Source of the DNA: Octopus sinensis
Taxonomy: Eukaryota
Assembly (NCBI RefSeq): GCF_006345805.1
Contig: NC_042998.1
Span: forward strand, 12,152,001-12,216,000
Reading direction: 5' to 3'
Length of the DNA stretch: 64,000 nt
The notes under the pieces were generated by a model that ran no database searches, was not told where the DNA came from, and worked only from the letters and a program-made list of their open reading frames with translations. The stretch's first letter is position 1. Each line of letters starts with the position of its first letter. Below, piece after piece: positions 16,501 to 46,032 of the stretch. Both the position numbers and the translations under genes were made by a program.

Positions 16501-19500
16501 CAGATACGTTAGATGCAGAAGTTTTTTTCATGTTGTATAACGTACAATTCCACAAGCGGCAGTGGATGAGTTACTAATGAGCGCAGCCTAGTGTAGTATA
16601 TATTTATACAGCATTTAAATGCCAGAAACACCTATGGATTCCGGTCTATTGCAGGCAAGCCGATGATTTTAGTAAAGGACTTTGCTGCTGGTATTTTAAT
16701 TAAATTTGTATATTATCAAAGAATAAGTCTACTACAGTTTATACATCCTACAACACGTCGCCTACAAGTGGGTCTTAAACGTATTGCCCCTGATCAGGTT
16801 AAGTACACAAGTAAAAATAGCATTTGTGTGAGTACAGAAAATCACTAGTACTTTCAGGCGCCGTAAAAATATTTCTTAATGAAGATATGCTACGTCTCAT
16901 GTTCATCATTTGAAATTTATTGAAATGTATATTGGATAATTCAAAAATTAGTGTATTGCTTAATCTTGAATATTGGTTTTGTTATATATCATAACTAAAT
17001 TCTTCATGCCGATTATATATGAACTGGGGACGCACTCAAAGAAAGTCATTGTATCTAAGCAATATACAATGTAAATACGTTTAGGTATTTTAATTATTAC
17101 AATGTTTGATCTTTCAGTCACTACACTAAAGCCACTACTGTTTCGTAGCAATGGTTTATGAGAAAGCATAATAATTATGCATACAATGATGTGTTTTCTG
17201 GTCCTGTGGGGTAGTTTGTCAATTTCAATATGAGGATTTTCCTTCTCACTCGTTGCAGTCAATGAATATTGAATTGATTAGTCGTGAAGCGATCGGAATA
17301 ATTTATGCAATTCTCTAAACTTCAAAGGATATCATTAACTCTATCAGTGTAAATATATTACCTAGGTCTCTGAAGACTATTTTAGTCTAAAATATGTAAT
17401 CATCAACCTCCTATTTGCAGTTTTTCCTGTCTACACTTATTTCGAACTCAATATATCGGTCATGTGTTGCGCCATTAAAGGAATTTTTGACCTCAAACAC
17501 CTCTAGAAGAGGAATAATTTTCACTGTAAAACTAAGTTTATATACAAAAGATTATATAACAAGCTGGGTCACAGACAAATATTAATGATTACGACGATAA
17601 CATCGTCAATAATAGTGATAACTATAATGAATGTCACTCTTGTCATCATCATCATTGCCGCAGTTAGAATGAAACTGTTTCATGGTGATAATATGTTTTC
17701 AGCCGCAGTCATATTTCTACGAATTTTCTGAATTAAAATTAAAGTTCAAATGATATTAAAATTTTTCCTTATGAATTAGAATACGCAATTAGATTCTTCT
17801 TCAATAATCGAAGTAGAATGAGAAATTAAATGTCAAAATTGTCAAACTAAAAGCCAAGTATAGCACAATGATATTTAAGTCCTAGTTATCTTTCTGTCGT
17901 TCTTTTCTTTTTACTGTGTCTGTAATGAAACCTACCATTTTAAAACCAATATCTTTGACGATAAAACTGTCACAGCAAATGTGACAGTTAGTTTCTCTCT
18001 AATTTCCTGTCTAGAATTACCATGATATTTCTTAAAAAGGTTTTCGCGTAGGTGTTGGTTTTATGAGAGTCCAACTTAATAAGTATGCCTGTGGAAGAGA
18101 AAATATATAATAAAAATGAATAAAACCTGGTCTGAAATGTACAACGTTTTTGCTAGCGGTACATTGAGATAGAATTCTTAACAATCCTAGTAGCATATCA
18201 TATGAACTTCATACATTTTATTATGAAGCATACAGAAATTTTAGAATTATATAATATAATTAAAATTAAAATTTTCTCTAAAAAGGTAAAGTATAAAAGT
18301 AAATAGAATACGATAGTTTTAGTACAAAATATGTTAAAGTATCAGTAAATAGATGGATTCAGATTTACATGTCTTGTAGCAGCGTATACATACACATATG
18401 CATGTGTGTGTATGTGTGTATGTGTGTGTTTGCTGAATGGCGTCATATAGATTGCTTGATCTTATTAATATTCAAGATTCTAATTATCATATGACTAAGC
18501 AAACAGACATTTCTCTTAAGAAAATAGTTTAGCCTTAGGTAAACTTTTAGCATCAGACCATTTGTATAGATGAATATCCTCCTCAAAAAAAGGAAAAGGA
18601 AAACAGAAAACAGAAACAAATTAATGAAGAAAGAAAAAGACAAATCAACGAAGAAAAATAATGTAAATTTTGTCTGCATATTGACTTAATAGATAAATTA
18701 TCAAAGCTCAAATGATATTGTATAACCTTTTCTTCGCACTCTATTTCATCATGGCTGTCAGTATGATGTTTGATTTTATTATGTTCACTAAGCGAGTAAA
18801 TCTGGATTTGATTCATTCTGATGAGTTCTTTTGAGTGGTACCGCATTCTCAGACCAATCATTGCTGAAATGTAAATATACGTTTCAATTTCAGTTTTATG
18901 CAATAGATTCTTCGCATCATGTTAAAAAATAAAGGGGAAAAAAAAAGACATCTTTTCATTAGGTTCTTAAAGTAATGTGAATCGAAATAAATTTAGAAAA
19001 CTTTTCTAGTTGACAAAAGTAAAAAAAAAGGTGTTAGAAATGTAGTTCATTGATTAAAAAATAAATGTTATTTAGTCCCAACAACTACAACCTGGGTTCA
19101 TTTCGGCAACATGTATAAATTTGATCTAGCATATATACAAAATTATATAATACTGGTTTTAAATTACAGCACAAGGCCAGCAATTTCGGAGGAGGGGAAG
19201 GTCGATTAGATCTACCCTAGTGTTAACTGGTACTCGTTTCATCGATGATAGACAAATTCGTCCTCGACAAAATTTGAACTCCGAACTTAAGAAATGCTGC
19301 TAAGCATTTTTGCAATGCGAGATAATGATTTTACCAGTTAGCCGCCCTACAATCTTGTATAATTTTAAGGTTAATGATATATATTCTATAAGTACTAAAA
19401 TAAATGCATCAAATAATTTAGCCACACCAGTCTTGGTGATTGTGAGAATATTGAGAGCATATTAAAAATACCCAAGACTAAAATATAGTCATAATTTTTT

Positions 19501-19738
19501 CGAATAGATAAACTGCAAATTAGTTAAATACAATGGTGCTCTAACAAAACTACTGGTTACTACACTACAACATGAAATATAACTGTTGTTTTTACTAACT
19601 ATATTTAATGATGATCCGCTATTGTTGCAATCGTGTTTAATTTACATTTGAACTAGTCTGTGCTATCGGCCTTTCTTATGTAATCAAAGCTATTGTTAAA
19701 AGAAAACGTGAGGATGGCATTTATGTTATTTTTTTCAG

Positions 19739-19916
19739 ATCTGCTCAATCAGGTTTTCCTGTGGCTAAACAACACCGACAACAGCGGCAGCAAGAACAGC
19801 GACAACAACAACAACAACAACAACAATCAAAGCTCACTTATAACGAGTTGATGTGCTATTTCGAAGATAATGTAGTTGATCACATATCCACTAGATTAGG
19901 AAATGAGATTTATTGA
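19739..19916 (+). CDS. Candidate terminal coding exon, polyQ-containing, gene unknown
   Basis: Acceptor gttatttttttcag, then 58 stop-free codons SAQSGFPVAKQHRQQRQQEQRQQQQQQQQSKLTYNELMCYFEDNVVDHISTRLGNEIY*. No upstream exon was identified. Confidence 0.3.
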
Positions 19917-20362
19917 TTTACGTTATATAACATCGGCTAGATAAATGAACATCGATAAATGAATTTGATTGATTGATAGAGTGATTGCTCTAGCATCAAA
20001 TCATAACCGATAATTACTCAAGGGCAAGTACAATGGACACGCTTTTTGATTTCTCATCGAGAAAATTTTCTGAGCGATATTTGGTGCATTTTAAATATGC
20101 ACCAAATATTGCTCATGTATTACCCTTTGGCCTCCTCTAACAAACTATAGGTTACACATTTGAAAGACACTTCTTCAGCTATGTAAATGTCCGATCACGC
20201 CCAAGCGTTTCCTAAATGTCTGTTTGATCCGAGACGATTATCAAAACAAAAAAAAAAACAACTACTAGACTGTTATCTAGCACTACTTTAATGGTTCATG
20301 TATTGATCGAGAGAGTAAGTGTTATCCATGGGCAAGTGTAGTATTCGTAATAGACTATGAAA

Positions 20363-20780
20363 GGCGGCGAGCTGGCAGAATCGGTAGCACGCCGTGCGAA
20401 ATGCTTAGCGGTATTTCGTCTGCCTTTACGTTCTCAGTTCAAATTCCAGCGAGGTCGAAATTGCCTTTCATGCTTTCGGGGTCGATTAAATAAGTACCAG
20501 TTACACACTGGGGTCGATATAATCAACTTAATCCGTTTGTCTGTCCTTGTTTGTCCTCTCTGTGTTTAGCCCCTTGTGAGTAGTAAAAAAATAGATATTT
20601 CGTCTGCCGCTACGTTCTGAGTTCAAATTCCGCCGAGGTCGACTTTGCCTTTCATGCTTTCGGGGTCGATTAAATAAATACCAGTTACGCACTGGGGTTG
20701 AAGTAATCGACTTAATCCGTTTGTCTGTCCTTGATTGTCCCCTCTATGTTTAGCCTCCTCTAGGCAATAAAGGAATAAAT
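20363..20780 (+). mobile_element. tRNA-derived SINE (family 1), one full copy plus a tandem partial copy
   Basis: ggcggcgagctggcagaatcg...gttcaaattcc (A/B-box-like) ...gtaaaaaaata. The body repeats from ~20595. Same family as 25978-26203 and 53056-53270. Confidence 0.85.
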
Positions 20781-22125
20781 AATAGACCATGATGCATGAT
20801 TACTTCAAGTAAATTCAGCAAGTAATTACAAAAACGATTTAAGAGAAGTTACCATCGTTTAGGAGTGAGATAACTGAATATTGCATTGGTATAGATTTCG
20901 ATATTATAGCTATTAAAAGATTACTGAAAGGAATCATTGAATATTAAAGCGATTTTGAGATGATCATACGAGAATGCGAACTACGTATCTTCCTCTTTAC
21001 AGGATAGCACTATGTCCTCTTGGCCTTTTAGGCTATGGCAGTAAATTATGATTGATTACACATGTCAGTATAGGACAAATGTCTATTCGCATAATCATAT
21101 GTTATCATTATTTTTTTCGAAATAATAGCACGTCATCTTAAATACAAATTAAGTAGACGTTTTTGCTCTTCATGGTGATTGATGGAAAGCAAAATTGTTT
21201 TTCATTTGTAAAACTTTCCATTAATTCAAATGTGTAATCATTGTTTCTAATGCTAATATGAATGACGCAATTTGATCGATCAAAATACATTTTATATTCT
21301 GAAAGTGATCATGAGTAAGGATTAATTACGATCTTAATTTGACAATTCCGAGAATTATATAAAACCGAGGAATGAATACATAAATACGCAGTCTATTTTT
21401 CCATGAAAAATACAATACTGAAATAAGTAGGTTTGAAAAGATTGTACGATAGCTATCTGAATTTCTCTATAATATTGTAGCAGCTGGTAAAAGAATAGAG
21501 GAATGATGTTACTCTATTACACTATCAAACAGACTATCAGATGCCTTTATACAGCATATCACTAGTCACGATACGCCTCCACTCTTTGTTCGTTGGCTCT
21601 AATCTATTCCATTTCAGCCTGAAAAGTTTGTGTCATGTTTCGATTCGTCTTGGAGGCCTTCTGAATAGTCTGTTCCTGCAGGTGCCTACCTTTTGTCCAT
21701 ATCTGCTCCTGTGGAACTTGCGCTTTCGGTATTACATGGCAATAACATTCACAGTACATTCCGTTATAGAATTAGCTCGTTTCGAATATCGTCCCACAAA
21801 CTTATTCCTAGCATGGGTCACTCCATTTTCTTTTTCAACCATGGCCTCTCGTTGTCCTTTTTTTTTTTTTGCAGAAACCTACGACTTGCTTGTATTTAAG
21901 TGTGCAGACATGACGGTTATATAGAAGAGACATGCGTGCAGGAAGCTGTTCGTTTGTGTTTTCAGGGCATTTCTGGTCAAGGCAAATGTTTTCATCACAG
22001 CTCATAAAATGTACAAGATTTCTGCGTTCCTTTCTCAGCATTTCTTTACTGTCAGTTCCAAGTAGATGTATTCCTGATTCAGACAAACATTGACACAAAT
22101 GTATACTCCACTTACACTATATATA

Positions 22126-22155
<30 letters not shown>

Positions 22156-22177
<22 letters not shown>

Positions 22178-22291
22178 CGTGACCACCGTGACCAACCAGG
22201 CTATCAGATGTTGCTACACATCGCTGGTCACAATGCGCTTCGAATTGTTTTAGCCTTCAAATGACGGTACCCCGCTGGCTAAGCGAGCAGG

Positions 22292-22296
<5 letters not shown>
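22156..22296. mobile_element. SINE-associated repeat fragment within (TA)n
   Basis: Matches 35876-35995 (atcagatgttgctacacatcgctggtcacaatgcg...ctaagcgagcagg). Confidence 0.7.
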
Positions 22297-22360
<64 letters not shown>

Positions 22361-22995
22361 AAGGGGCCCGAAGTCGATTAGGAAAATCTAAAATATACAA
22401 AAGATACAGTAAAATGAAATGAAATAATACATTTTATTGTATTTTATTTTAAATTATTTTGTATTGTCCTAGGCGACTTCCGGCCCTTTACCGCATATAT
22501 CATTCATTTATTTATTTACTTATTTTACCCCGTATTAACTGTTTTAATAGCCGGTCATTTGTTTTTTAAATTCTAACTGACCAGTTCTATCTCACTTTAG
22601 GCTATCTCACTTTAGGCTATCTCACTTTGAACACTAGGTGGATTGATTGAAAAGCCTACTAGTAAGCAAAAGTGACATTAATCGATATGCATTTTAATAT
22701 GATAAATTCTATTACTTAGTACTACAAACATAATTATTAATAATTATTATTATCATTATCATAACACTTTATTGTATCTTTGCTCCTTCCTTGACCTATC
22801 CTTTTTGCGTAAACAGCTATTATTATTTTCAATTCAACTTATGTACCCCCGTATATAAGACTATCGAACCCAAAACCCTTTTATATGTTTAGTCATTTAC
22901 TTAACGTCCTTGGGAGATACACACGCAACATGACTTGATTCTCAGCATATTCAACTTTTCCTTCGTCTTTTCTTTTCATTTATTTATGTGATTTC

Positions 22996-23110
22996 CACTC
23001 TGATGAAGCTCCATTATTCAATTCGGTTTTATTACCAACTATGATATATATTTTTAGCATAATAAGTGTGATGCCAAAGAACATTGGGAGCAGAAACAGC
23101 TGTTAGATGT
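22996..23110 (+). ncRNA. Degenerate hammerhead motif with long stem II insert
   Basis: cact-CTGATGA-a-gctcc...ggagc-a-GAAA-cagctgt-t. Helix III is palindromic (ACAGCTGT), but stem I is imperfect. Confidence 0.45.
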
Positions 23111-23349
23111 GATGCATATTTTTGTAAACAATTAGTAATTAATTATTGATACAAATCAATTGTTGTTCATCAATATTATCGCTATTTTCGGTTTTCTTAA
23201 AATTTTGACTCCTGTTTTTTATCTGTCTTTACTTATAATTTATGAGCATAACTTGTTTGCCCATGTTTAAATATAGGTAATATACCGGTAGCATAATGGA
23301 AACTTTTATCCCTTAGACGGTTATTTTAACCTCTAACTCAGCAAACATG

Positions 23350-23380
<31 letters not shown>

Positions 23381-23381
23381 A

Positions 23382-23420
<39 letters not shown>

Positions 23421-23451
23421 TTGTGTGTGTGTATGTGTGTGTGTGTGTGTA

Positions 23452-24040
23452 TAAAGGCAAAATTAATAGGGCACAAAAGTGACGGAGATTACTGTAAAAT
23501 TAACTCCAAAGCCACTAAACCACTACACTTAATGTCTGACAAAGGGTGGGGGAAATCGCGATACGGCTAAATACACTAGGGACTTACCTAGTATGTTGCT
23601 TCAGTGGCTTTGGAGTTAATTTGACTGTTAGTTTTACATAAATTATGCTAGTCAATACCCTCCGTCACTTTGGTGACCACTATTAATTTTGCCTTTAGAT
23701 TCTACTTGCTAATAAGCCACTCATTTAATTTGTTGTTGACACTTTTACCGTTTTGAAAATCAACGGCTTTACTTATAAGATTGACAAAGGAAGATGAGCT
23801 TACCATGGGCGTTAAAAGCTGCTGATGACAATTATGGTGGTCTACACCAAAATTCGAAATCGTGATACGGGTATAAACGCCAGGCGCTTACCTCACTTTG
23901 GCAATCATTAAGTATAATGTTTTAGTGACTTTGGAGTAAATTTTGTTCTTATTTTAGCATAAGCGATGCTAGCCAGTACCCTCCGTCACTTTTGTGACTG
24001 CTATTAATATTGCCTTTAGGTTGTAATTGCTAATAAGCCA
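23452..24040. mobile_element. Penelope-like repeat in inverted plus direct arrangement with two hammerhead-like motifs
   Basis: aaaggcaaaattaatag..gtgacggag (~23452-23487) is inverted relative to ctccgtcac..attaattttgccttt (~23660-23697), which recurs directly at ~23980-24020. Motifs at 23532-23568 (degenerate) and 23818-23871 (CTGATGA..aatt/aatt..C-GAAA-tcgtgat-a-cgg). Confidence 0.6.
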
Positions 24041-24049
24041 CCATATAAT

Positions 24050-24083
<34 letters not shown>

Positions 24084-24976
24084 GTGTGTGTGTGTGTGTA
24101 TGTGTGTGTGTTTGTGTGTGTGTGTGGCTGGTAATTTGAATTACAGACACAACTCATTTTTTCCTGCTGAAAAGACTGTTGCAACATGAAATAGATTGTC
24201 TTCCCCAAGGATACAACGTGGTGCCAGTATTCGAACTCACTACCTTGTCATCATGTGTCGAATACCCGCTGACCAATAAGCCACGCTCCTTCACTCATCG
24301 ATATATAGCGAAGAGATAATAAAATAGGTGAAGCAATCGAACCCATTTATCGTAGAAGTCTGCTTACAAACCATAACATTTACATATGAACTTAAATATA
24401 AAGGGTCTACATATAATTCAGTCTAGTGATACTATACAAATCTATCTTTTATTTGTGTTGAATTAATACAACTGTAGAAATTATTTTGGTAAAAACATTG
24501 TTGCTGGAGTTTAGGGCATCTTTTCAGCTGTCCACCAGACCTATATTGAAAGGTTTTACTGGCATGACTATTCTGTCATCTTTCGGGGTTACATACATAG
24601 ACATACACCGGTAAGAAGACTCGTACACTTTATTGAAAATGAATTTTTGTCTCACAGATAGAGTTTCACGCTGGAGACATTTAGATGGAAACATACATAC
24701 GTATGTGTGTATTCTCGCCTGAAGATCGTAGTGGCTTGATATACATTCCCCAAACAAACACGCTTCAACATGCACACTTCGACATACACCAATGCATACA
24801 CACATGTGTGCACAAAGGCCCATACTGACGCGTACCTCACAACTGGTCATTTTGTCATTAACCTCGTTATTAGGGCAAGTGATAGAAATTTACTTCAAGT
24901 CCACGCAGTGATTCTGTTGTTCAAGTATATTTTACATTGGTTTCTGATGTGTTTAAAAGATGAAATATTACTTTAC

Positions 24977-25219
24977 TCACGTTTTATAATGATAGCAGAA
25001 GCGATAGTAGCAGCTGGAGTGTGTTTCATGGCAAAACCAGAAAGGCATGTAGTTTTCACGGCAAAGGTTTCGTATCTTGAAGCAGTTATTACAATTGTAA
25101 TTTTGCTTGTTATGTCGGTTGACTGGATATGGCAAATTACTGTAGCTGCTATAGTAAGCATTACAGTCTGTGATAAATAACAGACTGAGCAGTATCGGTA
25201 TTATTAAAGTCTTCATCAT
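24977..25219 (-). CDS. Small secreted cysteine-rich, Tyr-rich peptide (80 aa)
   Basis: Signal-peptide-like MMKTLIIPILLSLLFITDCNA, then a 59-aa mature region with C-x2-C-x6-C-x9-C-x6-C-x4-C. A strong acceptor (tgctgatttttttttcag) ends at 25244, 24 nt before the ATG. AATAAA lies on the minus strand at ~24628-24633. Confidence 0.75.
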   Translation of the reverse strand: MMKTLIIPILLSLLFITDCNAYYSSYSNLPYPVNRHNKQNYNCNNCFKIRNLCRENYMPFWFCHETHSSCYYRFCYHYKT

Positions 25220-25977
25220 ATCTGTACTCGTGCCTTTTTCCGCCTGAAAAAAAAATCAGCAAAACATCTAAATGAATTAAAAGTATTCATATATTTACGT
25301 TGCCAATACATATTACACATAAATACATTTATATTCAGACCTGATTCATGACGCAAGAATTGAGTCTGAAACCTTTTTTTATTTTGAGCGCAAATCCTGA
25401 TCGAACGCTGACTGACTTTGTCTTTCATTCACCTAATAGTAACGGAATAGAAGCGTATAGAATTACTGTTCCTTTACTAAGGTGATATGTTGTCTTTATT
25501 AAAAATTATTATAGTTTAAAATAGGTTTCATTTAAGTTTTATTGTTAATGTCAATACAATTTCACAAATAATTCTTCACCAAAAGGCACAATTTGCCATT
25601 TACTTCTGATACCAGAGATTCAGTTGAAATATGAATTTAAGGGTAAAGCTAGAGAATTGCCGAAACTACTTTCTAGTTCAATATTCCGCCGAAGTCAGGA
25701 TATATATTTTTACATAGTCAGTCATAATGAGTTCAAATTTTGGCACAAGGCCAGCAATTTCGGCGAAAAGTCGCTTAAATCAAATCCATTGCTCAACAGG
25801 TACTTATTTTATCGACCTCGAGGCGATGAAAGGCAAAGTCGATCCAGGTGGCATTTGAATCTGAAACGCAAAGATGGACGCCAATTTGCCCAACTCGCTA
25901 ACAACTCTGCCAGCTCGCTACCTTACATAGCCAATAATATTAATACAATTATATATTTTGATATTTTTGATAACACC

Positions 25978-26203
25978 GGCGAGCTGGCAGACACGTTAGC
26001 GCGTCGGGCGAAATGCGTAGCCGTATTTCGTCTGTCGTTACGTTCCGAGTTCAAATTCCGCCGGGGTCGACTTTGCCTTTTATCCTTTCGGGGTCGATAA
26101 ATTAAGTACCAGTTACGCACTGGGGTCGATGTAATCGACTTAATCCCTTTGTCTGTCCTTGTTTGTCCCCTGTGTTTAGCCCCTTGTGGGTAGTAAAGAA
26201 ATA
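25978..26203 (+). mobile_element. tRNA-derived SINE (family 1)
   Basis: High similarity to 20363-20592. A diverged minus-strand relative lies at ~25742-25920. Confidence 0.85.
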
Positions 26204-27598
26204 TATATATTTTGATATTTGAAATGACTTAATGGTCTACAAATACCATGTATTTTAAGGCGTTGTGTCTATATTAGAAAACAACATTTCGAGAAATGGT
26301 AAGGGCGTAGGATAACTTTCAGTATCAACAATTTCTGAGCGACTGAAGGAAGGTCTAAGATATATCTTCTCAAAGTCAATCCTCTGTCTTAAAAAAGAGA
26401 CCCTGAATCAGCTTCTAATATTAAAGTGTAAAACCACAGTATGAAATTGCTTTTAGAGAACACTTAAAAGTCTCGCGAATAATAGGAAAATATAGGCTGA
26501 GGTTTGAAACTCATCTTAATTGTGAAAGGTTGCAGCTAGATTAGCCAAGTATTTGTGTTTTTTCGTTAAGTAGAATTAAAAGGTAAAACTACGTCACTTA
26601 TTCCAGACGAAAAATAATGTGTTGTAAAAGTTGTAGAACATTAGTAATCCTTCATCTTTAAGACACTCTAAGAGATAAACGTTATGACGTCGAGTTTAAC
26701 GAAATTGGGAAGCTCCGTGCAATAAATTTAGAAGCGTTTGCATAGATTTAGAGAAATTACTAGTGAAATCCATTCTGAAATATTTGGTGTCACTTATTTC
26801 GTGGGAGAGCAGGTGGAGTAATATCTCCAAATGCCAGTGTACTTTAAGCGAGGTAAATGGAGAGCATTTATAGTAGACTAGTTCTCTAATAGGAAAAGTT
26901 TACAAAGCCAATTAAAGCCTCAACTTTTGTTGAATTTTACTGAACATTTTCGACAGGCATATTTCCAGACGAAGTACTGCAAAAATTATAACATAAATAC
27001 TTCTAAATATTAATCCACGTATACATTGTTTCCTTCAAAAATTAAGAAATTACATGATACTCGAAAATCGTAACACTCAGATTCAACAAAAAATATAAAG
27101 TACATTAAGTGTAAGTATTTTGTAATTGAGATATAAATACTTTTATGATCTCCAGATAAAGTTGTCATCACTTTAATTTGAAATATCTTTAAGTTATAAT
27201 TTTCCTATGTTACGAAATTGAACATTTCTTTCTTTCCATAGAGTTGGTTGTATAATAAGTGGATTTTACTTTTGCTGTCGGAACATAAATTACATCTACT
27301 GTAATTTGAGAATAATTTATTGATTACAAATAAACCTGGTGCTACATCAGTATTCATGCTCTAGTTGAATGCTATATTAAAACAGGAAATATTTCCCCAT
27401 CAGTCGCAATTATATTGTTATATTTTTACTTGAGTTATTGCTTTTGCGGTTATAAGGTGAGAGAAATTATATGAAGAGGCACTGTAGGAAAACTAAGTTA
27501 TCTCTGTTCATTGCAGCACATGGATTTCAGGTCAACAGAACATAATAGGCCGCAACCGTATCTGTTGTGTCCATATCTACAAAAACGTTCATTAAAGG

Positions 27599-27664
<66 letters not shown>

Positions 27665-28010
27665 ACACAAGCATATAAATACATTGGTGCGAAATGTATC
27701 TTTTTCACAGTTTGTGGTAGTTAACGAAGGAACGCAATAAAATGATGAACTGTTGTGATAAATATGATAACACCCACCTATGTTCCTATGTTGCAACGAA
27801 AGAGATAGATTTCATTTCACACAACATGACATTTAGTTGATACATGCACACCACTCATTTTATTGACCGATCACCTTATACGTTTGCGTGTGTTTGTGTG
27901 TGCCCGTTTGTGTTTGTGTGTATGTGGCTGTGTGGTAAGTAGATTGGTTACCAACCACATGCTTCCATTTCCCGTCCACTGCATGGCAGTGTCTTCTACT
28001 ATAGCTTTAC

Positions 28011-28176
28011 ACGACGGGCTTCTTTCAGTTTCCGTCTACCAAATTCACTCACAAGGCTTTGGTCGGTTCGAGTCTACAGTAGAAGACACTTGCCCAAGAT
28101 GCCACGCAGTGGGACTGAAGCCGGAACCATGTGGTTTGTAAGCAAGCAAGCTACTTACACACAGCGACTTCAGCGC
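28011..28176 (-). mobile_element. SINE (family 2) 5' part
   Basis: Reverse complement of 40526-40690. A partial plus-strand head lies at ~27924-27997. Confidence 0.75.
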
Positions 28177-28213
<37 letters not shown>

Positions 28214-28669
28214 TAGACAGATAGATAGATTGATAGATATATACAGTTTGATGTTAGTTGCCACGCTCAGTAAACCGTGACATCTAAGCCACATACTGAT
28301 TGGCCAAAATGCTATTTGTATGATTCAACCTGCTGTAGCCCATCGGGAGGTATTTAAAGGGCAAATTTAATCACTTCCCAGGGTATGAGACTAGTACTTA
28401 TTTCATCGACCCTGAAAGGATGAGAGGTAAATTCGACCTCGGCGGAACGTAGCTAGGGGCGATATATCGCTAACTTTTTCAGCCAACGTGCTAACGATTG
28501 TGCCAGCTCACCGCGTAAAGAAAGATTTGAAAAAAAAAATATTGTAATAAAAACGTAAAAATCAGAATAGAATTTCATTGGATGCTACATTCTATAAACA
28601 ATCATACAAAGTCGGATATATATATATGTGTGTGTGTGTGTGTAATAAAATTTTATCCTACATTAGATG

Positions 28670-31600
28670 TTTGGTTTGGCATCCTTTCTGTCTCGGGAGA
28701 CAATGGAGTTGCGCATTTTTTTTTTTTTCTAGGTCTAGTCCGGCTGTTATATTTTATTTCCTGTTACATTTCTTGCTGTGGCTGTGTAGTCCTATCCTGG
28801 ACAAACGCTCCCTCTGGCAGGTACTGCAAATGTAGCGAAGACTGTTCCTGGCTGATTGTAGTGCCATGGTCTCTTGTTTATGTCTCTTCCTTTCTTTCCA
28901 TTTCTCCTCTCTCTTCTCTGTCACTCCTCTGTATACCCTCTTTTACTGTACGTCGCCATTCTCCACGGTTGCCGGCGACTGCCTCCCAACCGCTAATGTT
29001 GATGTTGCAGGCCTTCATATCCCTTTTGCAAACATCCTTGTAACGCAAGATCGGTCTACCCACAGACCTAGTACCCCTAGCAAGCTCTCCGTAGAGTATG
29101 TCCTTGGGGATTCTGCCATCTTTCATACGGCTAACATGCCCAAGCCATCTCATACGTCTTTGTGTGAGGAGTGCAAACATGCTTGGTATTCCTGCTTGCC
29201 TGAGGACATCTTTGTTGGGGATATGATTCTGCCATTTGATGTGGAGGATTTTTCGGAGGCAGCGCAGGTGAAAGATGTTTAGGCGACGCTCTTGGCGTGT
29301 GTATAGCGTCCAGGTCTCGCTTCCATACAGTAGAGTGCTGAGTACACATGCCTGGTAGATCTTCATTTTTGTGGTCTTGGTCAGCTTATTGTTGTCCCAA
29401 GCCCGTTTGGAGAGTTGGGCCATCGCAGCAGCTGCCTTGCCAATGCGTATATTGAGCTCAGCGTCAAGGGATAGGTTGTAGGTGACGGTAGAGCCCAGAT
29501 AGGTAAACTTCTCCACCTCTTGTAATCTGTGGTCTCCAATATGTATGTTTGGGATGTCCAATGTAGCCTGGCCCATGATGTTGGTCTTCTTAAGGCTGAT
29601 AGCTAAGCCAAAGTCGTTACATGATTGCTCAAAACAGTTAATGAGCCTTTGGAGGGCTTCTTCTGTGTGTGTTACCAGAGCGGCATCATCAGCAAATAAC
29701 ATCTCCTTGATCAGGACGTTTCTGATTTTGGTCTTGGCACGCAGGCGCGAGAGATTGAACAGTTTCCCGTCACTTCTACTGTGCAGAAACACTCCATCAT
29801 CTGATGTCTGAAAGGCATGTGACAGCAAGAGTGAGAAGAAGATGCCAAACAATGTAGGAGCGAGGACACAGCCTTGCTTTACCCCGTTTTTTTATTTGGA
29901 AGGCGGCTGATGTTGAACCGTTGTGCTGTATGGTGCCTTGCATGTCATCGTGGAAAAACTTGATGATCCTCAGCAGCTTTGGTGGACATCCGATTTTTTG
30001 GAGCAGGAGGAAGAGGCCTGTTCTGCTTACCGAGTCAAAAGCCTTTGTTAGATCAATGAAGGCCATATATAATGGCATTTTCTGCTCTCTGGACTTCTCC
30101 TGAAGTTGGCGTATGGAGAATATCATATCGATAGTTGATCTGCTTCTTCTAAAGCCACACTGCGATTCCGGATAGATTCGAGAAGCAAGTAGTTGTAGCC
30201 TGGCCAGGATAACGCGGGCAAAGGTCTTTCCAACAGTGCTTAGAAGGGATATACCACGGTAATTGTTACAATCACCACGGTCACCTTTGTTTTTGTAGAG
30301 CGTAATGATGTTGGCATCCCGCATATCCTGAGGGACTGTACCCTCTTCCCAGCACTGACACAGAAGCTCATGAAGGTGCCGAAGCAGGATGGTGTTTTTG
30401 CCGGCTTTGATGATCTCTGAGGGGATGTCGTCTTTTCCCGGAGCCTTATTTCTTGCTAGGGAGTCAATAGCCTTGGTGAGCTCTGCTATAGATGGCGGAC
30501 TGTCAAGTTCGCACATGACTGGCAAGATCTTGACACTCTCGACTGCAGCCTCAGCCACTGTGGTCTCCCGTGAGTAGAGATCCTGGTAGTGCTCCACCCA
30601 TCTATCCATTTGCTTGCCTTGATCCCTGATGAGATCTCCAGTAGTTGATTTCAGAGGGGCTGACTTGGTTGCGGATGGACCGAGGGCCTTCTTCAAACCA
30701 GCATACATCCCACGGGTGTCGCCCCTGTCAGCAGCTGACTGGATACTCTGACAGATTTCCTGCCAATACCTATTTGCACAGCATCTGGCTGTCAGTTGGG
30801 TTTTATTTCGTGCCTTTCTGAGTTCTTCGAGTGACTTTGTAGAAGAGTCACTCTTGTATTGCACCAGAGCTGCACGCTTTGCTTCGATAACTGGCTCCAG
30901 CTCTGAGAGCCCAGCATTGAACCAATCTGGGTTTTGCCTTTCTCTCATGCCGAAAGTATCCAATGATGTCGTATACAAGGCTTCCCTGATATAGTCCCAC
31001 CTACTTTCACAGCAGAGGAGGTTGGGCAGCTACTGAGGGCAACCTTGATAGAAGCAGCAAAACATTTTCGCAGTGTAGGGTCCGAGGTTCTGGCGGTGTT
31101 GATGCGTGGTCGGCCCACTTTCTTGGAGCGATGGACTTTTTTAGGGAGAATCCTCACCCTGCTTCTAATTAGTGAGTGGTCTGTGTCACAATCCGCACTG
31201 TGGTAACTGCGGGTCAATAGAGTGGAACTCAGAAAGGATCTCCGTGTAATGATGAGATCCAGCTGATGCCAGTGGTGAGATCTTGGATGTCTCCAGGATG
31301 CCTTGTGGGATGGCTTGCTGGTGAAGAATGTGCTTGTGATGCACAGGTTGTGGTATGTGCAGAATTCGAGTAGTCTCTGACCATTGTCATTCATGTTGCC
31401 AATACCAAAGTGTCCAACACAAATGGGCCACGAATCATGGTCAGATCCCACGCGAGCGTTAAATCCCCTAGAAGGTAGATATTTTCAGTCGTTGGTATAT
31501 TTTCTAGGACACAGTTGAGATCTTTGTAGAACTGGTCCTTGGTCTCCTCTGAGCTGTAGAGAGTGGGAGCATAGATGCTGAGTAGATGTACTGAGCCAGA

Positions 31601-32560
31601 AGAAGTCGAGAGGCGCAGTGAGAGGATACGCTCAGTGCCTCCCGATGGTGGTTCTATTGAGGAGAGTAGTGAGTTTCTCACTGCAAAGCCAACGCCATGT
31701 TGACGAGGTTCTTCTGGATCTCTTCCCTGCCAAAAGAAGGTGAAGTCCTGCTCTTTGAGTCTGCCGTTTGAGGGAAGTCTTGTCTCCTGCAGCCCAGCAA
31801 TATCTATGTTGAGCCTCTTTAGTTCACGGTCAATGATGGCCGTTTTCCTTGTGTCTTCAATACTGAGAAGATCGTCAGATATTCCAGGACACATGGTCCT
31901 GACATTCCAGCTGCCAACTGCAGAACTGGTGTTTTCTTGAATTTTAGTTGCTTGCCTGGTGCAGAGGTTGCAGGCCGCTTTTCGAGTCGTACTCTTAGCT
32001 CAAGCACCCAATGGAACAGGCGGCTTGTGGCGGGTCAGCACCTTATTAACTGGGGGCTGCCCAGCTTGAGGTGGGCAGTAGCTAACCAATAGGACACGGA
32101 AGTCCCTCCCACCGGCAGAGGTAACCCGTAGCGTCCATATTTTACGCCAATCTGAATGGACTTATCACTCGTAACTGTTACCTCCCGTGTTGTTTCTGCA
32201 GCTTTTTACAGCAGCACTGAAGTGTCCTCTCCAGTTTTGCGCAGGCCTGGGCTATAGATAAGAAAGTCCTGGGTAGCCCAATCGTCAGGTTTCCTCTCTC
32301 GACCTTGCTGATGTAGTCCAGTGGAGTGCAGTGCATTACGTTTGGCACCAGCTTGGTTGCAGGAGCTGCCGGAAGAGTGTTGAATCGAACACTAGACCGC
32401 CTTCGGGGCTCCACTCCGGATTTCATTGAAGGTTGTCTCCTTTCCGTAACCCTGGATAGGGGCCCATACCGGGTACTGTCAGCCGGAGCCAGCTGAGCCC
32501 GGAACTCGTGTCAGGCAGGGTCGTCACTCCCTGAAGTAGTGAAGAAGTTCGCTACCCACT
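28670..32560 (-). mobile_element. Full-length RTE-clade non-LTR retrotransposon (APE endonuclease plus RT), frameshifted
   Basis: APE motifs SWNVRTM, GLQETR, HGVGF, IYAPT, GD(F)N, W.HPRS..WHQLD, DTDH. RT motifs NYRGISLLS, QCGFR, FIDLTKAFD, GVKQGCVLAP, LFADD, FTYLGS. The C-terminal CSTC..SRIGLHSH..KC ends at TAA 28754-28756. The 3' UTR contains ccattgtctcccgagacagaaaggatgcca, and there is a ~550-bp GC-rich 5' UTR. Confidence 0.95.
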
Positions 32561-33143
32561 ACCTTTTCAAGTAATGTTAAATTATTATTACGGTTTTTTT
32601 TTTTTTTCCCCTATGTTAAATTTCAACCACTAATATTCACCATCATCATCAGCAGCAGCAGTTGTAGTAGAAGCAGCAATATCACTAGGAGGGAGTGGGA
32701 AGGGGAGAGAATAGAGAGATATCCGGTATTGGTGGTGGGGGTGGGTTTGGGCGGGCGCACAGCGAACAGGTCAGCCGGAATTTAGGGAGAATTAACGAAA
32801 TTCTAATAGGTTGTTAGCGATGAGATCATTTAAAACTGTCAGTCCTAACGTAGTAGAGATGGAGAAAAAAGAAAAAAGGAGCAAAAATATTCTTAGCTTT
32901 GCGTATCGTCATCGTGTGGCAGAATGAAAATAAAAATGGCCAGCGAACAGGTCAGCCGGAATTTAGGGAGAATTAACGAAATTCTAATATATGTATATAT
33001 ATTCTAATATATGTATATATATATATATATATAAAGTTAATCCAAACAAGAAAACACAAAAAAAACAAAAAAAACACAGCAACGCCAGGACGTGGAACAA
33101 ATAAAGTATTATTGGACGCTCAGGAAAGAAGGGAAGAAGGAGG

Positions 33144-33178
33144 GTTTAACGTTTCGAGCGGAGCTCTTCTTCAGAAAC
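33144..33178 (-). ncRNA. Minimal type I hammerhead ribozyme (intact core)
   Basis: Minus strand: GTTT-CTGAAGA-A-GAGC-tcc-GCTC-GAAA-CGT-T-AAAC. Helix III is the ACGT palindrome. It lies in a short repeat (~33060-33200) also present at 46745-46930. Confidence 0.75.
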
Positions 33179-33204
33179 ACAGGAGAAGGAAATCTCTCTC
33201 CCTC

Positions 33205-33218
33205 TCTTTATCTATCTA

Positions 33219-33313
<95 letters not shown>

Positions 33314-33321
33314 ATATATAT

Positions 33322-33385
<64 letters not shown>
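33205..33385. repeat. (TCTA)n/(TA)n microsatellite; similar tracts at 33877-34146 and 50355-50525
   Basis: Direct reading of the sequence. Confidence 0.95.
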
Positions 33386-33394
<9 letters not shown>

Positions 33395-33628
33395 CTAATA
33401 TTAGGGAATAAATCCAAACTTACAGGGAAAAATCAGATTTAGGATTGAATCCAATTTTATAGTAAAATATTATATTATTAAATTAGAGACAAAATTATAT
33501 TAATTATATTTTTAATAATTTTGTTACATATTTAAATAATATAGATTAATCATATGTATTGGCTTAAGTCTTTCATTGTTTGATTTGCCTAATAGTGGTT
33601 TTGTCTCTAATTTAATATAATATATATA

Positions 33629-33677
<49 letters not shown>

Positions 33678-33897
33678 GCAATCCTACATGTTGATTCACT
33701 GAAGTGACAAGAATTGTATAGATATCTGAAATGTGGATTGAATTGTTGTAAGGGAATTGTAGTTAAATTTTACTCTTTCACTGAGCGAAGAATCTGATAA
33801 ATTTCGAGAATATATCACGAAGTAAGACTCTTCATAAAACCAAAACCGGTTGTTTCAATTTCGCATGAAGTCATAGATCTATCTATCTATCTATCTC

Positions 33898-33993
<96 letters not shown>

Positions 33994-33997
33994 ATAT

Positions 33998-34055
<58 letters not shown>

Positions 34056-35219
34056 GTCTGTCTATCTATCTATCTGTCTGAATGTCTGTCTGTCTGTCTG
34101 TCTGTTTGTTTGTCTGTCTGTCTGTTTGTTTGTCTGTCTGTCTGTATATGAATGTTTTTTTTCCTCATTTACTGGTTTCAGCGAAATTCTTGGACCATGG
34201 TTTGTATGTATACACATGGACACACATGATATATGTACCAGTTTATTTAATGGGTTTCCTATATATTATGCCTTACAGTATTTCTTCTTAATGTCATAAA
34301 TTTATGATCTTGCTACCTAACATGAAAAATGTACATTTATTTCTATTTCTCTTTAATTATCCTTCCATAGCCTGCCCTACATAACGTATATGGCTTTAAC
34401 GCTATTTTTTCTAACTACTACACTTGTAACTCCCACTCAACCATTACAACTAAAACTAAATCACTTGCACACTTCCTATTATTGAGATAATTTAATAAAG
34501 GATATGATTATTAAATTAACCGATTTCTCTTGTATGACCTGGTGCCATATAATTCAGCTTTATTGTTGTGAGAGAAAGCTCATTTTATATTGATGATTAG
34601 CCTGCTAGTATGTTTATTGAATAAATAAGCGCAGGCTTTTCTATCTAGATATGCTATTCGCTTAAATTCCCCACTTACAAAATATGTCGCGTAGATGCCT
34701 CATTAACGTTAGTTATTTCTTGCCTTCGATTCGATACGCTTCCCAGATGAACAATTTATAGAGTCCATCCCCCGCGTGCTAAGCCTTAATTCACATTTTT
34801 ACCGACCTTTTCTCTCCTCCACGCTTAAACTTATTTAACAAACTAAATCCGCACCTACACACAGACACACAAGATCACGCACATATATCCATAGATACAA
34901 TTATAAAACGTTCCGGCAACCTACTACAACAATTCTACGGAAGCAGACAATACAAAACAAAGTAATTTTAAATTCTTTTATGTTAAACATTGACATATAC
35001 TTACATAAACATATATATGCATACAAGCATATATGCATAAATATATAAGCTTGTACATATGTATGTATGAAAATACGTGCATATGTATTTGAATATATGT
35101 GTATATAAGTGTACATATTTAGACACACATATATACATATATATATATATTCAATTCTCCTTATATATTCACTACTCTCTCTCACACACACATACTCTCT
35201 CTCTCTCTCTCTCTCTTGT

Positions 35220-35275
<56 letters not shown>

Positions 35276-35383
35276 GGCATCTAGAAGATCCAAGAGTGGC
35301 AGGTAACGCTAAGTAAATGCTATGGACAGACTATAGTTAAACTCTTGGCTCGATAGTGATTAGGGGAGGAGTTTAATGTGGGT

Positions 35384-35441
<58 letters not shown>

Positions 35442-35454
35442 TACACAAAAACGG

Positions 35455-35495
<41 letters not shown>

Positions 35496-35509
35496 CAAAA
35501 GAGACGACA

Positions 35510-35737
35510 AAGTCAAGGCCGTGAGGAGTTTTCAGGACATTTATAGGGAAAGAGATATATAGTTTTACAGCTGTTTCTGGGAAATTCCTTATTTCGAACT
35601 TAAACATTTACTTCTATTTAACCATCTCACATCATCTCTAATGAAGAGATGTCAATAATATCCCAGGAACAGTTGTAAGACTATATCTATATCTCTTTCC
35701 GTATAAACGTTCTGAAAACCCCTAACAGCCTTGACTT
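35510..35737. mobile_element. Imperfect fold-back (Penelope-like) with decayed hammerhead at 35635-35680 (+)
   Basis: Arms ~35510-35582 and ~35661-35737. Motif tct-CTAATGA-a-gagat..atccc-a-GGAA-cagttgt-a-aga; the left arm keeps the ancestral acagctgtttctggga. Confidence 0.6.
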
Positions 35738-35818
35738 CGTTATCACTTAATATATATATATATATATATACAACTCTGTGTATGTATATATATGTACATA
35801 TATGCATATATATATATG

Positions 35819-35860
<42 letters not shown>

Positions 35861-35875
35861 TACATATATATATAT

Positions 35876-36140
35876 ATCACGTGATCACGTGACCGACCAG
35901 ACCATCAGATGTTGTTACACATCGCTGGTCACAATGCGTTCGCATTGTTTTTAGCCTTCGAATGGCGCCACCCCGTTGGCTAAGCGAGCAGGCCAACAGA
36001 AGATAGAGTGGGAGAAAGAGTGGTGAAAGAGTACAGCAGGGATCACCACCCCCTGCCGGAGCCTCGTTGAGCTTTTAGGTGTTTTCGCTCAATCCTGCGA
36101 CCGCGAGTCCGCTGCCCTAACCACTTGGCCATTGCGCCTC

Positions 36141-36143
<3 letters not shown>
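35876..36143 (-). mobile_element. tRNA-derived SINE (family 3), internally deleted
   Basis: Head gtggaggcgcaatggccaagtggttagggcagcggactcgcgg is shared with 58635-59015 and 57615-57752. Confidence 0.8.
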
Positions 36144-36197
<54 letters not shown>

Positions 36198-37617
36198 TAA
36201 ACGACACATGTCCTTAAGTCCTATTTATAGCTTGTTATGTTGAGGTCTTAAATATATTTATCAGGCACAGTCAAATGTTCATATTAGCAAGAGATTGTTT
36301 CGACCAAGAGAAATATATCAATGTCTAACGCACTATTGTTTACCTTTCACCTGAAACTCAAGAAAGCCATCTCTTATCATCTGACTCCTAATATTTGCCA
36401 TTTTCAATTATATTTGTACGCCTTACATCTTTTTCGTATATTTGGCTATGTTTTAGTTCTGTTCATTCTGTTTGATATCTATGAATCCATTACCTTAGTC
36501 CACGTACTAATTCAATGAAGATTAATGGAGTGCTTAATTTATCAATCTCTTTTAACTCGGTGAACAATAATTACTATGTTCCCCTTTCTCAGATTATTAA
36601 TCAGCGAAAACCTTTTCTGAAATTTCAGAATGCGTCCGCACATTTCTTTTGTTCATTTGTGTTCTCAGTCTTTATTCCCTTTCTATGTCCTTTATTTTTA
36701 ATCAATCACTCTCCTCATTATTTCATTACATTTCTCTTAATCCCCTATGATTTGAGTTCATTGCACTATTTATGTATTTCATCTCCATTCTTCATATATC
36801 CTTATATATTTAAGATCATATGTTTAATCATATTTATATATTATATCCAATGGTTGAGTTTCACTATTTTGTTTTAGTTTACTTTGTTGTAATTTCTTGT
36901 TTTCTTCAACACAAAACTTCTTTATTTCCTTTACCTAGTTCCTTTAATCCCTGATTAACTGTTTGATAATTTGATCATGACGTCTTTATTATTTTCTGTG
37001 GCATAATATTATTATATTATCATATCCCATTCACATAGCACTAAATTTAATCATTATTAAACACGCTATGCTGCCGTCATACACATAAATATACTTGTTA
37101 CGATCTGAAACTGTTTACGAACTCTAAAACCTTTTGAAATTTCAGAAAGTCATTATTCTTGTAACATGTATTTTCTTCATACCACGTATTTTTTCAGCAC
37201 CCTGTTATACCTTTAAATTTCTATTTTATAACGACTTAGTATATTTTTGTAATTGAATTACAAAGCAGCTTTCCTTCAAGCAATAACGTAGTTCTTTCAA
37301 TAATTCTTACTATAATTCATAAGTTTCATTTTCCCGCGACAATTTAAGAAAGCATACACACATTTCCTGAACTCTTCTTCAGACACATCCATTTCATTTT
37401 TTACTCGTATTTTACTGAACAAGTTTAGGAGGAAATCATTATTTGAATCATTTTCTGCTTTTATTATTCCTTTTGCAATTATTAATGCTGTTTTTCACTT
37501 CTACCATTTAACTGCAAAATTGTTCGAATTTGTACATATTAAACGTATTTCATATTTGAAAATAATAGAGCTCTTTCGTTTATTAACATTTTAAAACCTT
37601 CGTTTTTACGTATCGAA

Positions 37618-37864
37618 GAGAAAAGAATTATAGTCACACCTTGTTGACGTGGCCACTTATTAAGATAGTGGTTTCTTGTGCAGATAGTGGCGTATTGAGT
37701 GAGAAGCATTTTGAAAAAGATCACTACTGCATGCTGTGTCGCAAAGTATCTGAGCATTGCTGAGAAATTTGGACTTTAGCTGATATTTGCGACAAACGTC
37801 AGACAGGTGCAAGAACTATGCTCTTTCAGAGAAAACGCTGATTGTCACTGGATCTCTCAAATAA
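37618..37864 (+). pseudogene. Probable pseudogene paralog of the 24977-25219 Cys-rich peptide
   Basis: xKRIIVT/LLTWPLIKIVVSCADSGVLSEKHFEKDHYCMLCRKVSEHC*EIWTLADICDKRQT/C gives C-x2-C-x6-C-x9-C-(x6)-C. The in-frame TGA sits where the intact gene has Arg (C-R-E). Two 1-nt frameshifts are inferred and no ATG is present. Confidence 0.5.
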
Positions 37865-39102
37865 CAATGTTCTTTATAGAAGGTATGCTAGACATGGTCT
37901 CAAATATACAGGCAGACTCTTGCAATCGCTATATTGATAATAATAAAAATATCTCAATCCATAAAAAATTTAATGATGGAAAATTTTAAGCACTTTACTG
38001 TCGGTCCACTGACATACCATTATCAGATACAAATGATTTGGATTGCTGTAGCTGAAATACTGAAAGTGCTTGACTTGTATAGATGTGTGTGTGTCTCTGT
38101 GTGTGTATTAAAACTGGTGCATAATTTTTATATTCAAATTACTGAAATATTAATGAATAACAAAAGGCTGGGTGGGTGGTATAGTGGTTTCTGAGGGAGA
38201 GCGTGAAATCATTCTGATTCTATGGAAAACATTTGTCAGCCATTTTGAATATTGCACATAAAACTACGATCGCCAAATAGCATTCAATTATCGGCAGAAC
38301 TAGTAGTATTCCAACGTTGACTCACTACAAAAATAGTCTACGTGGAATAGATTTGCGGTTTTTCCTCTTTCGGCTCTTTACGTTCTGATTTCAAATCCTA
38401 CCTTTATCATTTTTGCCTTTCATCCTTCTGGTGTCGATAGATTTAGGTACCAGTCAAGATTTAGTGTCAGTAAATCCCATCCCTCGAAAATTTTTAGCGT
38501 TATTATTGTAACATTGATGATTCGCTCACTACACAAATAATGTCTTATGCTGCATGTTTCGGTTCTTTACACGTATGTCAATTTAAAACTTACAGTTTAA
38601 CTCTGTAAGTTTTCTATTCCCCCTTAGTCAAAGAAATACATTATCAGTTCGCCATTTGATTGGATGTAATTAAATAGAACCCTCCAACAAACATACTTCG
38701 TTGGAGATAATGATTCGTGGTATTTGTTGCTAATCATTGTATTTCGAGTCCAAATTCTGCTGAGGCCGACTTAGCCTTTTACCCATCGGGGTCGATAAAA
38801 TAAGTGTCAGTCAAGTATCAGTGTCAATATTATTGGTTTTCTCGTTTCACTAAACGTTGATCACTTTCCCCAAGTATTGAAAGTTAGGGCTGCATGCTAG
38901 CAGAATCGTTAGAATGCCGGATAAAATACCTAGCAGCATTTCGTCCGGCTTTGTTTTCTGGGTTGAAATTTCGCTGTGATCGAATTTATCTTTCTCCCTT
39001 TCAAGTTAGATAAAATAAATACTAGTTTAGCACTGGGATCGATGTATACGACTTGTCACTCACCCAAAATTTCAGGCCTTGTGCCTATAGTAAAAAGGAT
39101 TG

Positions 39103-39176
<74 letters not shown>

Positions 39177-39177
39177 G

Positions 39178-39872
39178 AGTGAGAGAGCATCTCATACCAT
39201 GTTCCTAGAGTTAAATTATCCAAATCTCAAAGAATATTATCAAAACATGTCTATAATACTCGTCCACTACTCCTGCTCCTGATTAGAGATGTACATATCT
39301 TCAGCCACTAACGGACATGCTCAACTAGATAAGGTCAAGCAGATGACAAAGATCAAACAACTGACAAGCAAAATTAGAATTTTCTTCTGGTCGAGTAACC
39401 CACCCCGATCAAAAGGTCCCTGAATAAGGTTTGTTTAAGGATGTTGAACGAACCACCCGTGTTTCCAAAGGTGAATTATCCAAATCTCTAAGAATTCCTT
39501 AGAACACACGGCTATGATGTTCCCCAACTACTTCTGCTCATGATCAGAGTTGCACATATTGTCAGCCACTAAGGGACATGTTCAACTGGTTAAGGTCAAA
39601 CAACTGACAAGCAAATCTGTGGCATTGAGCAGAATATTTGCTGTAGCCCATCTTTTATACCAAGACAAAACAATGTACAGGGTAACACTTTCAATCAGTT
39701 AAGATCAGGAGCCATGAGAGCCACTGTCTGGTATTGCAGCAGGGCATAATTGAGCTGAATAGTTGCTGTAGCTCATCTTTTATACCAAGACAAAACAATG
39801 TACAGGGTAACACTTGCAATTAGTTAAGATCAGGAGCAATGAGAGCCACTGTCTGGTACTGCATACGGGTAT
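39178..39872. mobile_element. Diverged, rearranged inverted copy of the ~555-bp (AAT)n-embedded element
   Basis: Reverse complement of the 6154-6708 sequence with internal duplications. Flanked by (ATT)n and (CAT)n/(CTT)n/(ATT)n/(AAT)n. Confidence 0.8.
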
Positions 39873-39899
39873 TCATCATCATCATCATCATCATCATCA

Positions 39900-40061
<162 letters not shown>

Positions 40062-43058: not shown

Positions 43059-43094
<36 letters not shown>

Positions 43095-45876: not shown

Positions 45877-46032
<156 letters not shown>

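Follow-up and report, generated by a model that had tools for sequence, protein, structure and literature searches.

A conserved six-cysteine octopod gene for a predicted secreted peptide, with a second coding exon behind a stop-like splice donor

Comparison with the argonaut Argonauta hians identifies an open reading frame at 24977..25219, on the minus strand of the window (the whole stretch of 64,000 nucleotides analysed here), as the main coding exon of a gene with a second coding exon. Codon by codon, the same comparison shows that the encoded protein is under strong purifying selection, with its six cysteines kept. By sequence searches the protein defines an orphan family, found so far in two octopod lineages. 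The product may well be a processed extracellular signalling ligand, a reading that we favour while holding it at somewhat short of an even chance. Genome annotation misses small secreted peptides more often than any other class of genes, and little of the endocrine and chemical signalling of cephalopods has been mapped. A gene that has hardly changed between the argonauts and an Octopus-like lineage, with no relatives elsewhere and no known cysteine framework, is therefore a concrete candidate for a lineage-specific signalling molecule.

The reading frame consists of an ATG, 80 codons and a TGA, giving 80 residues. The parts of its exon, called exon A, are the following.

24981..25243, minus strand: exon A, with acceptor ttttttttcag/GCGG at 25243/25244
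25220-25243, minus strand: part of the 5' UTR that lies in exon A
24981-25219, minus strand: coding sequence of exon A, codons 1 to 79 plus two bases of codon 80
25157..25219, minus strand: predicted signal peptide, residues 1-21, with cleavage predicted between Ala21 and Tyr22
24981..25156, minus strand: mature domain encoded in exon A, made of an invariant N-terminal stretch rich in Tyr, Ser and Pro, a variable linker and the six-cysteine core

An earlier note on this DNA had described a 21-residue signal-like leader, followed by 59 residues with the pattern C-x2-C-x6-C-x9-C-x6-C-x4-C and with 10 Tyr, 4 His and 7 Lys/Arg against 2 Glu, and each of these points was recovered. Residues 1-21 start with Met-Met-Lys, continue with a 13-residue hydrophobic stretch and carry Cys and Ala at positions -3 and -1, an n/h/c layout that was judged by eye. 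The six cysteines of the 59-residue part (C43, C46, C53, C63, C70 and C75 of the precursor) are spaced 2-6-9-6-4, that is C2C6C9C6C4C, and a recount gave exactly 10 Tyr, 4 His, 3 Lys, 4 Arg and 2 Glu, with no Asp. This exon A mature part is basic, and 25% of its residues are aromatic. The acceptor is as strong as had been claimed: a polypyrimidine tract and AG occupy 25244-25260 and are kept in A. hians, and conservation extends to a branch-point-like CTRAY motif and to the bases with which the exon begins at 25243/25244. Splice-site and branch-point motifs, like the TATA and CCAAT motifs considered below, follow the textbook consensus. Reading frames of at least 80 residues with a signal-like start and at least six cysteines arose in 2 of 200 simulations of the window under a second-order Markov model. 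The peptide exon is present in one copy within the window, outside all repeats.

A collection of 5.8 billion proteins returned one relative, a 110-residue hypothetical protein of A. hians without described function (P0001, Ahia01_000555300), encoded in assembly GCA_054771915.1 on contig BAAFZT010000027.1 (locus L001). It is 78% identical to the reading frame across all 80 residues (E = 1.5e-38). No protein encoded by the window came back from this search, though proteins of Octopus bimaculoides and O. sinensis are included in the collection; the gene is thus unannotated in its source genome, in agreement with its description as unannotated-looking. Likewise, an exact-sequence look-up of the 80-residue product found it not to be on record.

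P0001 and the window gene are orthologous by reciprocal similarity, by a shared exon structure and by a colinear locus, in which three unique conserved blocks keep their order and orientation. The donor phase, a Lys-Arg site and an N-E-S sequon are also shared. P0001 differs by five extra N-terminal residues, due to an upstream ATG that is absent in the window, and its signal peptide and last ~8 residues have diverged; its introns are ~3-10 times shorter than those of the window. As read from the two loci, the gene is single-copy in both, with no tandem array. A real secreted-peptide gene, as the earlier note had it, is thus backed by an orthologue that keeps all six cysteines, and the term lineage-specific fits matches that so far come from octopods only.

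All six cysteines and their spacing are identical in P0001, and 35 of the 38 residues of the core are the same. An unbroken run of twelve residues at the predicted cleavage site, 11 of them following it, is the same in both species. Within the cysteine core, 16 synonymous differences were counted for 18.2 sites, against 3 non-synonymous differences for 95.8 sites (Nei-Gojobori). Over the mature part in exon A, omega by the same method is ~0.02 with synonymous sites saturated, and the differences fall 6/3/20 on the three codon positions; these selection estimates are those of a single species pair, the window against A. hians. The signal peptide has diverged (pN = 0.31), though the n/h/c layout and the small residues at -3 and -1 are common to both species. 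Saturated synonymous sites, together with introns that cannot be aligned, indicate a deep divergence of the two genomes.

The earlier note had placed the whole coding sequence in one exon, and this did not hold. The stop TGA (24977-24979) falls inside a consensus phase-2 donor, AC/GTGAGT, the orthologue is annotated as spliced at this place, and a conserved in-frame exon lies at 18788-18863.

24975..24980, minus strand: splice donor GTGAGT, phase 2, with the A. hians counterpart GTAAGT at the same position
18864..24980, minus strand: intron 2, 6117 nt against 608 nt in A. hians, common to the annotated relative
18788..18863, minus strand: exon B, the second coding exon, with acceptor atttcag/C at 18863/18864, encoding residues 80 (third base) to 104
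18720..18787, minus strand: start of the 3' UTR, with AATAAA at 18775-18780 and patchy conservation with A. hians to ~18720

Exon A of A. hians has an in-frame stop too (TAA), yet the annotated product runs on. P0001 is reproduced exactly by joining locus L001 at AAAAC/GTAAGT to the exon that follows tttcag/A, and the window has the equivalent AAAAC/GTGAGT in the same place. Since a GTRAGT donor placed after the second base of a codon reads G-TRA-GT, which is always a stop, the TGA is no evidence for the end of the coding sequence. This calls for caution in scans of open reading frames: a phase-2 GTRAGT donor mimics a stop, and calls of single-exon peptides need a check for a downstream exon.

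Exon B adds 24 codons in frame, up to a TAG at 18788-18790, and encodes a conserved Pro-Leu-Lys-Arg and an Asn-Glu-Ser sequon. A block of 75 nt, at 18810-18884, has 79% DNA identity to exon 2 of A. hians amid sequence that cannot be aligned, and the joined product finds that exon by tblastn at E = 1.6e-6. The frame of our model is the only one open in both species. Differences fall 3/2/8 on the codon positions, and omega is ~0.07 (first 18 codons, Nei-Gojobori, one species pair). The stops of the long products lie within one codon of each other in the two species. Intron 2, at 608 nt in A. hians against 6117 nt here, fits the smaller argonaut genome, ~1.5 Gb versus ~3 Gb (PMC12682272).

It could still be that the 80-residue product is the real one, the transcript ending in or retaining intron 2, and that exon B owes its conservation to something other than coding. 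This alternative, which is orthogonal to the question of function, would account for an in-frame stop straight after Lys-Thr in both species (TGA and TAA). In addition, the A. hians gene models were produced by the automatic GINGER pipeline from ab initio predictions, RNA-seq and homology (PMC12682272). Because these types of evidence are mixed, the annotation alone is no proof of splicing, and the pattern of conservation carries more weight. A phase-2 GTRAGT donor creates such a stop by itself, and the single shared frame of exon B, its 3/2/8 differences, its low omega and the near coincidence of the long-product stops all speak for translation through the junction, so that we consider the shorter product very unlikely and retain the spliced one.

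Further upstream, the comparison with A. hians points to a possible start of the gene.

51941..52226, minus strand: promoter-like conserved block, 79-81% identical to A. hians L001 814-1095
~51947-52045, minus strand: candidate non-coding first exon, ending in a donor-like CAC/GTGAAC
25244..51946, minus strand: putative intron 1, ~26.7 kb against ~9 kb in A. hians, filled with repeats that include a broken LINE

The block at 51941-52226 is unique in the window, and is colinear with its A. hians counterpart and oriented like the coding exons; apart from it, nothing upstream of the acceptor at 25243/25244 gave a unique colinear alignment to A. hians. It contains a 40-nt stretch identical in the two species, which holds a CCAAT (52098-52102) and is followed by TATATATAGG at 52067-52076. 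The T-rich ~100 nt downstream of TATATATAGG have no ATG in either species, and the end of the block, AATCAC/GTGAAC, is identical in both. A TATA box occurs in the block, as do TCACGTGAAC-like motifs at both of its ends. Judging by these motifs and by colinearity, we consider it somewhat probable that the block comprises the promoter and a non-coding first exon of the peptide gene, with an intron 1 of ~26.7 kb. The motifs are ambiguous as to orientation, and the block may act in the opposite orientation or on another gene, and the CACGTG at its end could be an E-box instead of a donor. A layout of three exons, one non-coding and two coding, is likely.

The spliced product is predicted to have 104 residues: the signal peptide (1-21), a 69-residue segment that reaches up to the conserved Pro-Leu-Lys-Arg, and a 12-residue tail. 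The segment has a pI of ~8.6, a net charge of +3, 23% aromatic residues and a mass of ~8.6 kDa; the tail is acidic (pI ~4.2) and begins Thr-x-Gln-Asn-Glu-Ser. In both species the signal-like leader and the conserved Pro-Leu-Lys-Arg, a predicted processing site, give the precursor the generic layout of neuropeptide and hormone precursors. Lys-Arg after Pro-Leu is not a furin site (R-x-K/R-R) and, by convertase specificity, is of the neuroendocrine-convertase type.

Structure prediction, one of the checks that the earlier note had proposed, was informative for one helix, C43 to ~E55, and unreliable for the remainder. Two AlphaFold models, with pLDDT of 51 and 60, conflict in topology, one having a hairpin and the other helices. 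They agree on that helix alone, from the first cysteine to about Glu55 (pLDDT 71-78 in the second run), and the invariant N-terminal stretch of the mature peptide is modelled as disordered. No significant match to the PDB was found by Foldseek with either model.

Searches for known families were likewise negative. Pfam, at E <= 10, gave no meaningful family for the 80-residue product, the 104-residue product or P0001: its sole line, Herpes_UL43 (E = 0.23, 10.9 bits for a cut-off of 24.9), is noise, as is an M24 peptidase with E > 1, the sole match of the sequence and profile searches against the PDB. Among 1.84 billion cluster representatives, searched exhaustively with a profile, P0001 was the sole true relative; the two other matches, P0002 and P0003, are translated tandem repeats without the cysteine pattern and were set aside as spurious. 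The first of the large protein searches covered every 5-mer of the conserved core. The peptide had no match in a scan of JGI metagenomes, and Rfam had none on the whole window. Three peptide fragments of the product had no match in a full-text literature search, and the supplementary material to the A. argo genome yielded none either.

In the earlier note the cysteine framework had not been recognised as that of a defensin, ShK, Kazal, Kunitz or knottin, and no family match from Pfam, PDB, profile or Foldseek searches contradicts this. The profiles of Kazal, Kunitz, ShK, WAP and chitin-binding type 2 domains were unmatched in Pfam (E <= 10) for the three protein versions. CS-alpha-beta defensins and mytilins have C-x3-C and C-x-C, both absent from C2C6C9C6C4C, and for likeness to this family Pfam gave 0 families at E <= 10 and the PDB profile search none of relevance. 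With the first model (pLDDT 51), Foldseek ranked a mytilin 4th, at a non-significant E of 7.9 and a match probability of 0.07; the second model had 0 matches. As for inhibitor cystine knots and knottins, the peptide has no adjacent CC and no toxin or knottin match in Pfam, and the models (pLDDT 51-60) are too weak for a pairing of the cysteines. Eclosion hormone, CHH/ITP and attractin gave no Pfam, PDB sequence or profile, or Foldseek match, though the peptide may yet resemble them in function.

If the product is a signalling ligand, its signal peptide (residues 1-21) would direct the precursor into the endoplasmic reticulum, where the six cysteines would form three disulfides around the helix from ~C43 to E55. 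A cut of the prohormone-convertase type at Lys-Arg (residues 91-92) would then release the 69-residue basic peptide, rich in Tyr and other aromatic residues and of ~8.6 kDa, and would also free the short acidic tail, which could be N-glycosylated. Outside the cell, the 69-residue peptide would act as a specific ligand, similar to a hormone, a neuropeptide or a pheromone, and contacts with its receptor would explain the invariance of even the unstructured N-terminal stretch. Three observations make us favour this scheme: the signal peptide drifts and the mature peptide is frozen, including the segment modelled as disordered; the Lys-Arg after Pro-Leu is conserved and is of the neuroendocrine-convertase and not the furin type; and each of the two loci has one copy of the gene.

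Among known six-cysteine hormones and pheromones, eclosion hormone, CHH/ITP and Aplysia attractin share with the octopod peptide a length of ~60-70 residues, three disulfides (predicted here), secretion and strong conservation. Helical content is also common to them and to the one segment of our peptide that is consistently predicted. Their cysteine spacings differ from the one found here, and in Pfam, PDB and profile searches the peptide has no likeness to known hormone families, which speaks against a ligand. Other points against it are that mussel antimicrobial precursors likewise join a basic peptide to an acidic C-terminal tail, and that 17% Tyr with 10% Cys is also seen in adhesive or cross-linked matrix proteins. 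That we are dealing with a deeply conserved hormone or pheromone restricted to octopods, with a framework of three disulfides not seen before and perhaps a new fold, missed by annotation because of its stop-like donor, is possible but rather doubtful. If this were true, the peptide would bind a receptor that has yet to be paired with its ligand, for instance in reproductive, optic-gland or chemosensory signalling.

The earlier note had proposed a lineage-specific three-disulfide effector, of antimicrobial, salivary or venom, or structural and adhesive function. The secreted six-cysteine peptide and its restriction to a lineage stand; venom and antimicrobial roles fit poorly, given a signal peptide with a pN of 0.31 and a frozen core, and a structural or adhesive role is possible. 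A frozen core with a diverged signal is the reverse of the pattern typical for venom and for most antimicrobial peptides.

A host-defence antimicrobial peptide is unlikely, though several traits of the precursor suit it. The anionic C-terminal pro-piece would keep the cationic peptide inactive or soluble until removed at Lys-Arg, in the manner of mytilins, myticins or defensins. Mussel antimicrobial precursors are built of a signal, a basic peptide and an acidic extension. The octopod precursor shares with mytilin, myticin and the MGD defensin this layout, with a signal peptide, a small, basic, disulfide-rich peptide (pI 8.6-9.0) and an acidic tail, and the low-confidence first model, a helix plus a hairpin, is the one that ranked a mytilin 4th, if non-significantly. 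The number and spacing of cysteines are different in the mussel precursors, however, with no sequence likeness and no reliable likeness of fold: the CS-alpha-beta signature (C-x3-C ... C-x-C) is absent, Pfam finds no defensin, mytilin or macin even at E <= 10, and the second AlphaFold model has another topology. After the Lys-Arg cut the net charge would be just +3. Immune effectors, moreover, usually diversify and duplicate, whereas this gene is single-copy, with an omega of ~0.02 and saturated synonymous sites, a constraint far stronger than is usual for genes of the mussel antimicrobial type.

Quite unlikely, too, is a role in a structural or adhesive matrix, with the protein joined by Tyr/DOPA, His or disulfide cross-links into the egg chorion, the stalk cement, the cuticle of the suckers, the beak or the radula. 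Composition is its sole support: the mature part in exon A, basic and one quarter aromatic, has 10 Tyr, 4 His and 6 Cys, a composition reminiscent of mussel foot protein 6 and of the proteins of cephalopod beaks and suckers. Low-complexity repeats are lacking, Pfam finds no chitin-binding domain, and conservation position by position is extreme across a deep divergence, which is unusual for such proteins; nor would a conserved dibasic site and a pro-tail be expected in them.

That the peptide enters prey as a component of saliva or venom is highly improbable. The product is small, secreted and disulfide-rich, with a generic C-C-C-C-C-C framework, and it can be likened by this pattern alone to framework-IX-type cone-snail peptides, which are also secreted, molluscan and provided with six separate cysteines. 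But the classical venom pattern, a conserved signal with a hypervariable mature peptide, is the opposite of what the octopod gene displays, as is the case relative to the cone-snail peptides themselves, for which Pfam and the PDB give no match. The gene is single-copy, it has been kept both in a benthic octopus-like genome and in a pelagic argonaut, and no toxin family matches it in Pfam or the PDB. A chance reading frame or a transposon fragment can practically be dismissed: the window has 44 ATG reading frames of at least 80 residues, mostly in repeats or low-complexity sequence, but this one has an orthologue, which lies at a colinear locus and is under purifying selection, and its exon matches no repeat in the window and neither Pfam nor a transposon. 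An origin from a transposon, which the earlier note had named as a ground for refuting its reading, was not borne out by the window repeats or by Pfam, and was rejected on the single copy in the window, the lack of a Pfam match, and P0001 as the sole true relative among the 1.84 billion representatives.

Several other features of the window were recorded. Much of its excess of long reading frames (44 versus ~15 in simulations) comes from microsatellite or low-complexity tracts. Such tracts, at 8606-9232, 33209-34079, 39839-40294, 45841-46110 and 57071-57583, contain homopolymer-run reading frames of 150-208 residues, which are spurious. Positions 1-2000 have a strong negative GC skew (-0.33), unlike the remaining window.

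Within putative intron 1, a LINE remnant at 28878-31894 on the minus strand retains parts of the endonuclease and of the reverse transcriptase, split by three frameshifts into four overlapping pieces of reading frame. Its GC content is 45-49%, versus ~35% around it. The proteins closest to its reverse-transcriptase frame belong to O. bimaculoides (84-89% identity), and O. sinensis reaches 67%; by this similarity the window is most probably that of an Octopus-like octopodid. Oysters, corals, amphioxus, shrimps and fishes have relatives that are 60-70% identical, a distribution of unusual breadth.

A SINE-like repeat of ~230 bp has at least five copies in the window, at ~87% identity. Its copies include the following.

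25977-26208: SINE-like copy
53050-53267: SINE-like copy
20365-20781: SINE-like tandem dimer, period 184
45452-45614: SINE-like copy

Two SINE-like copies in inverted orientation lie just upstream of the peptide exon (25768-26141). Another copy, at 99-184 of the A. hians locus L001, has 76% identity, which suggests an old octopod repeat family. An element of ~97 bp occurs twice in opposite orientations, at 28012-28108 and 40590-40686, and is 82-86% identical to A. hians L001 7799-7895.
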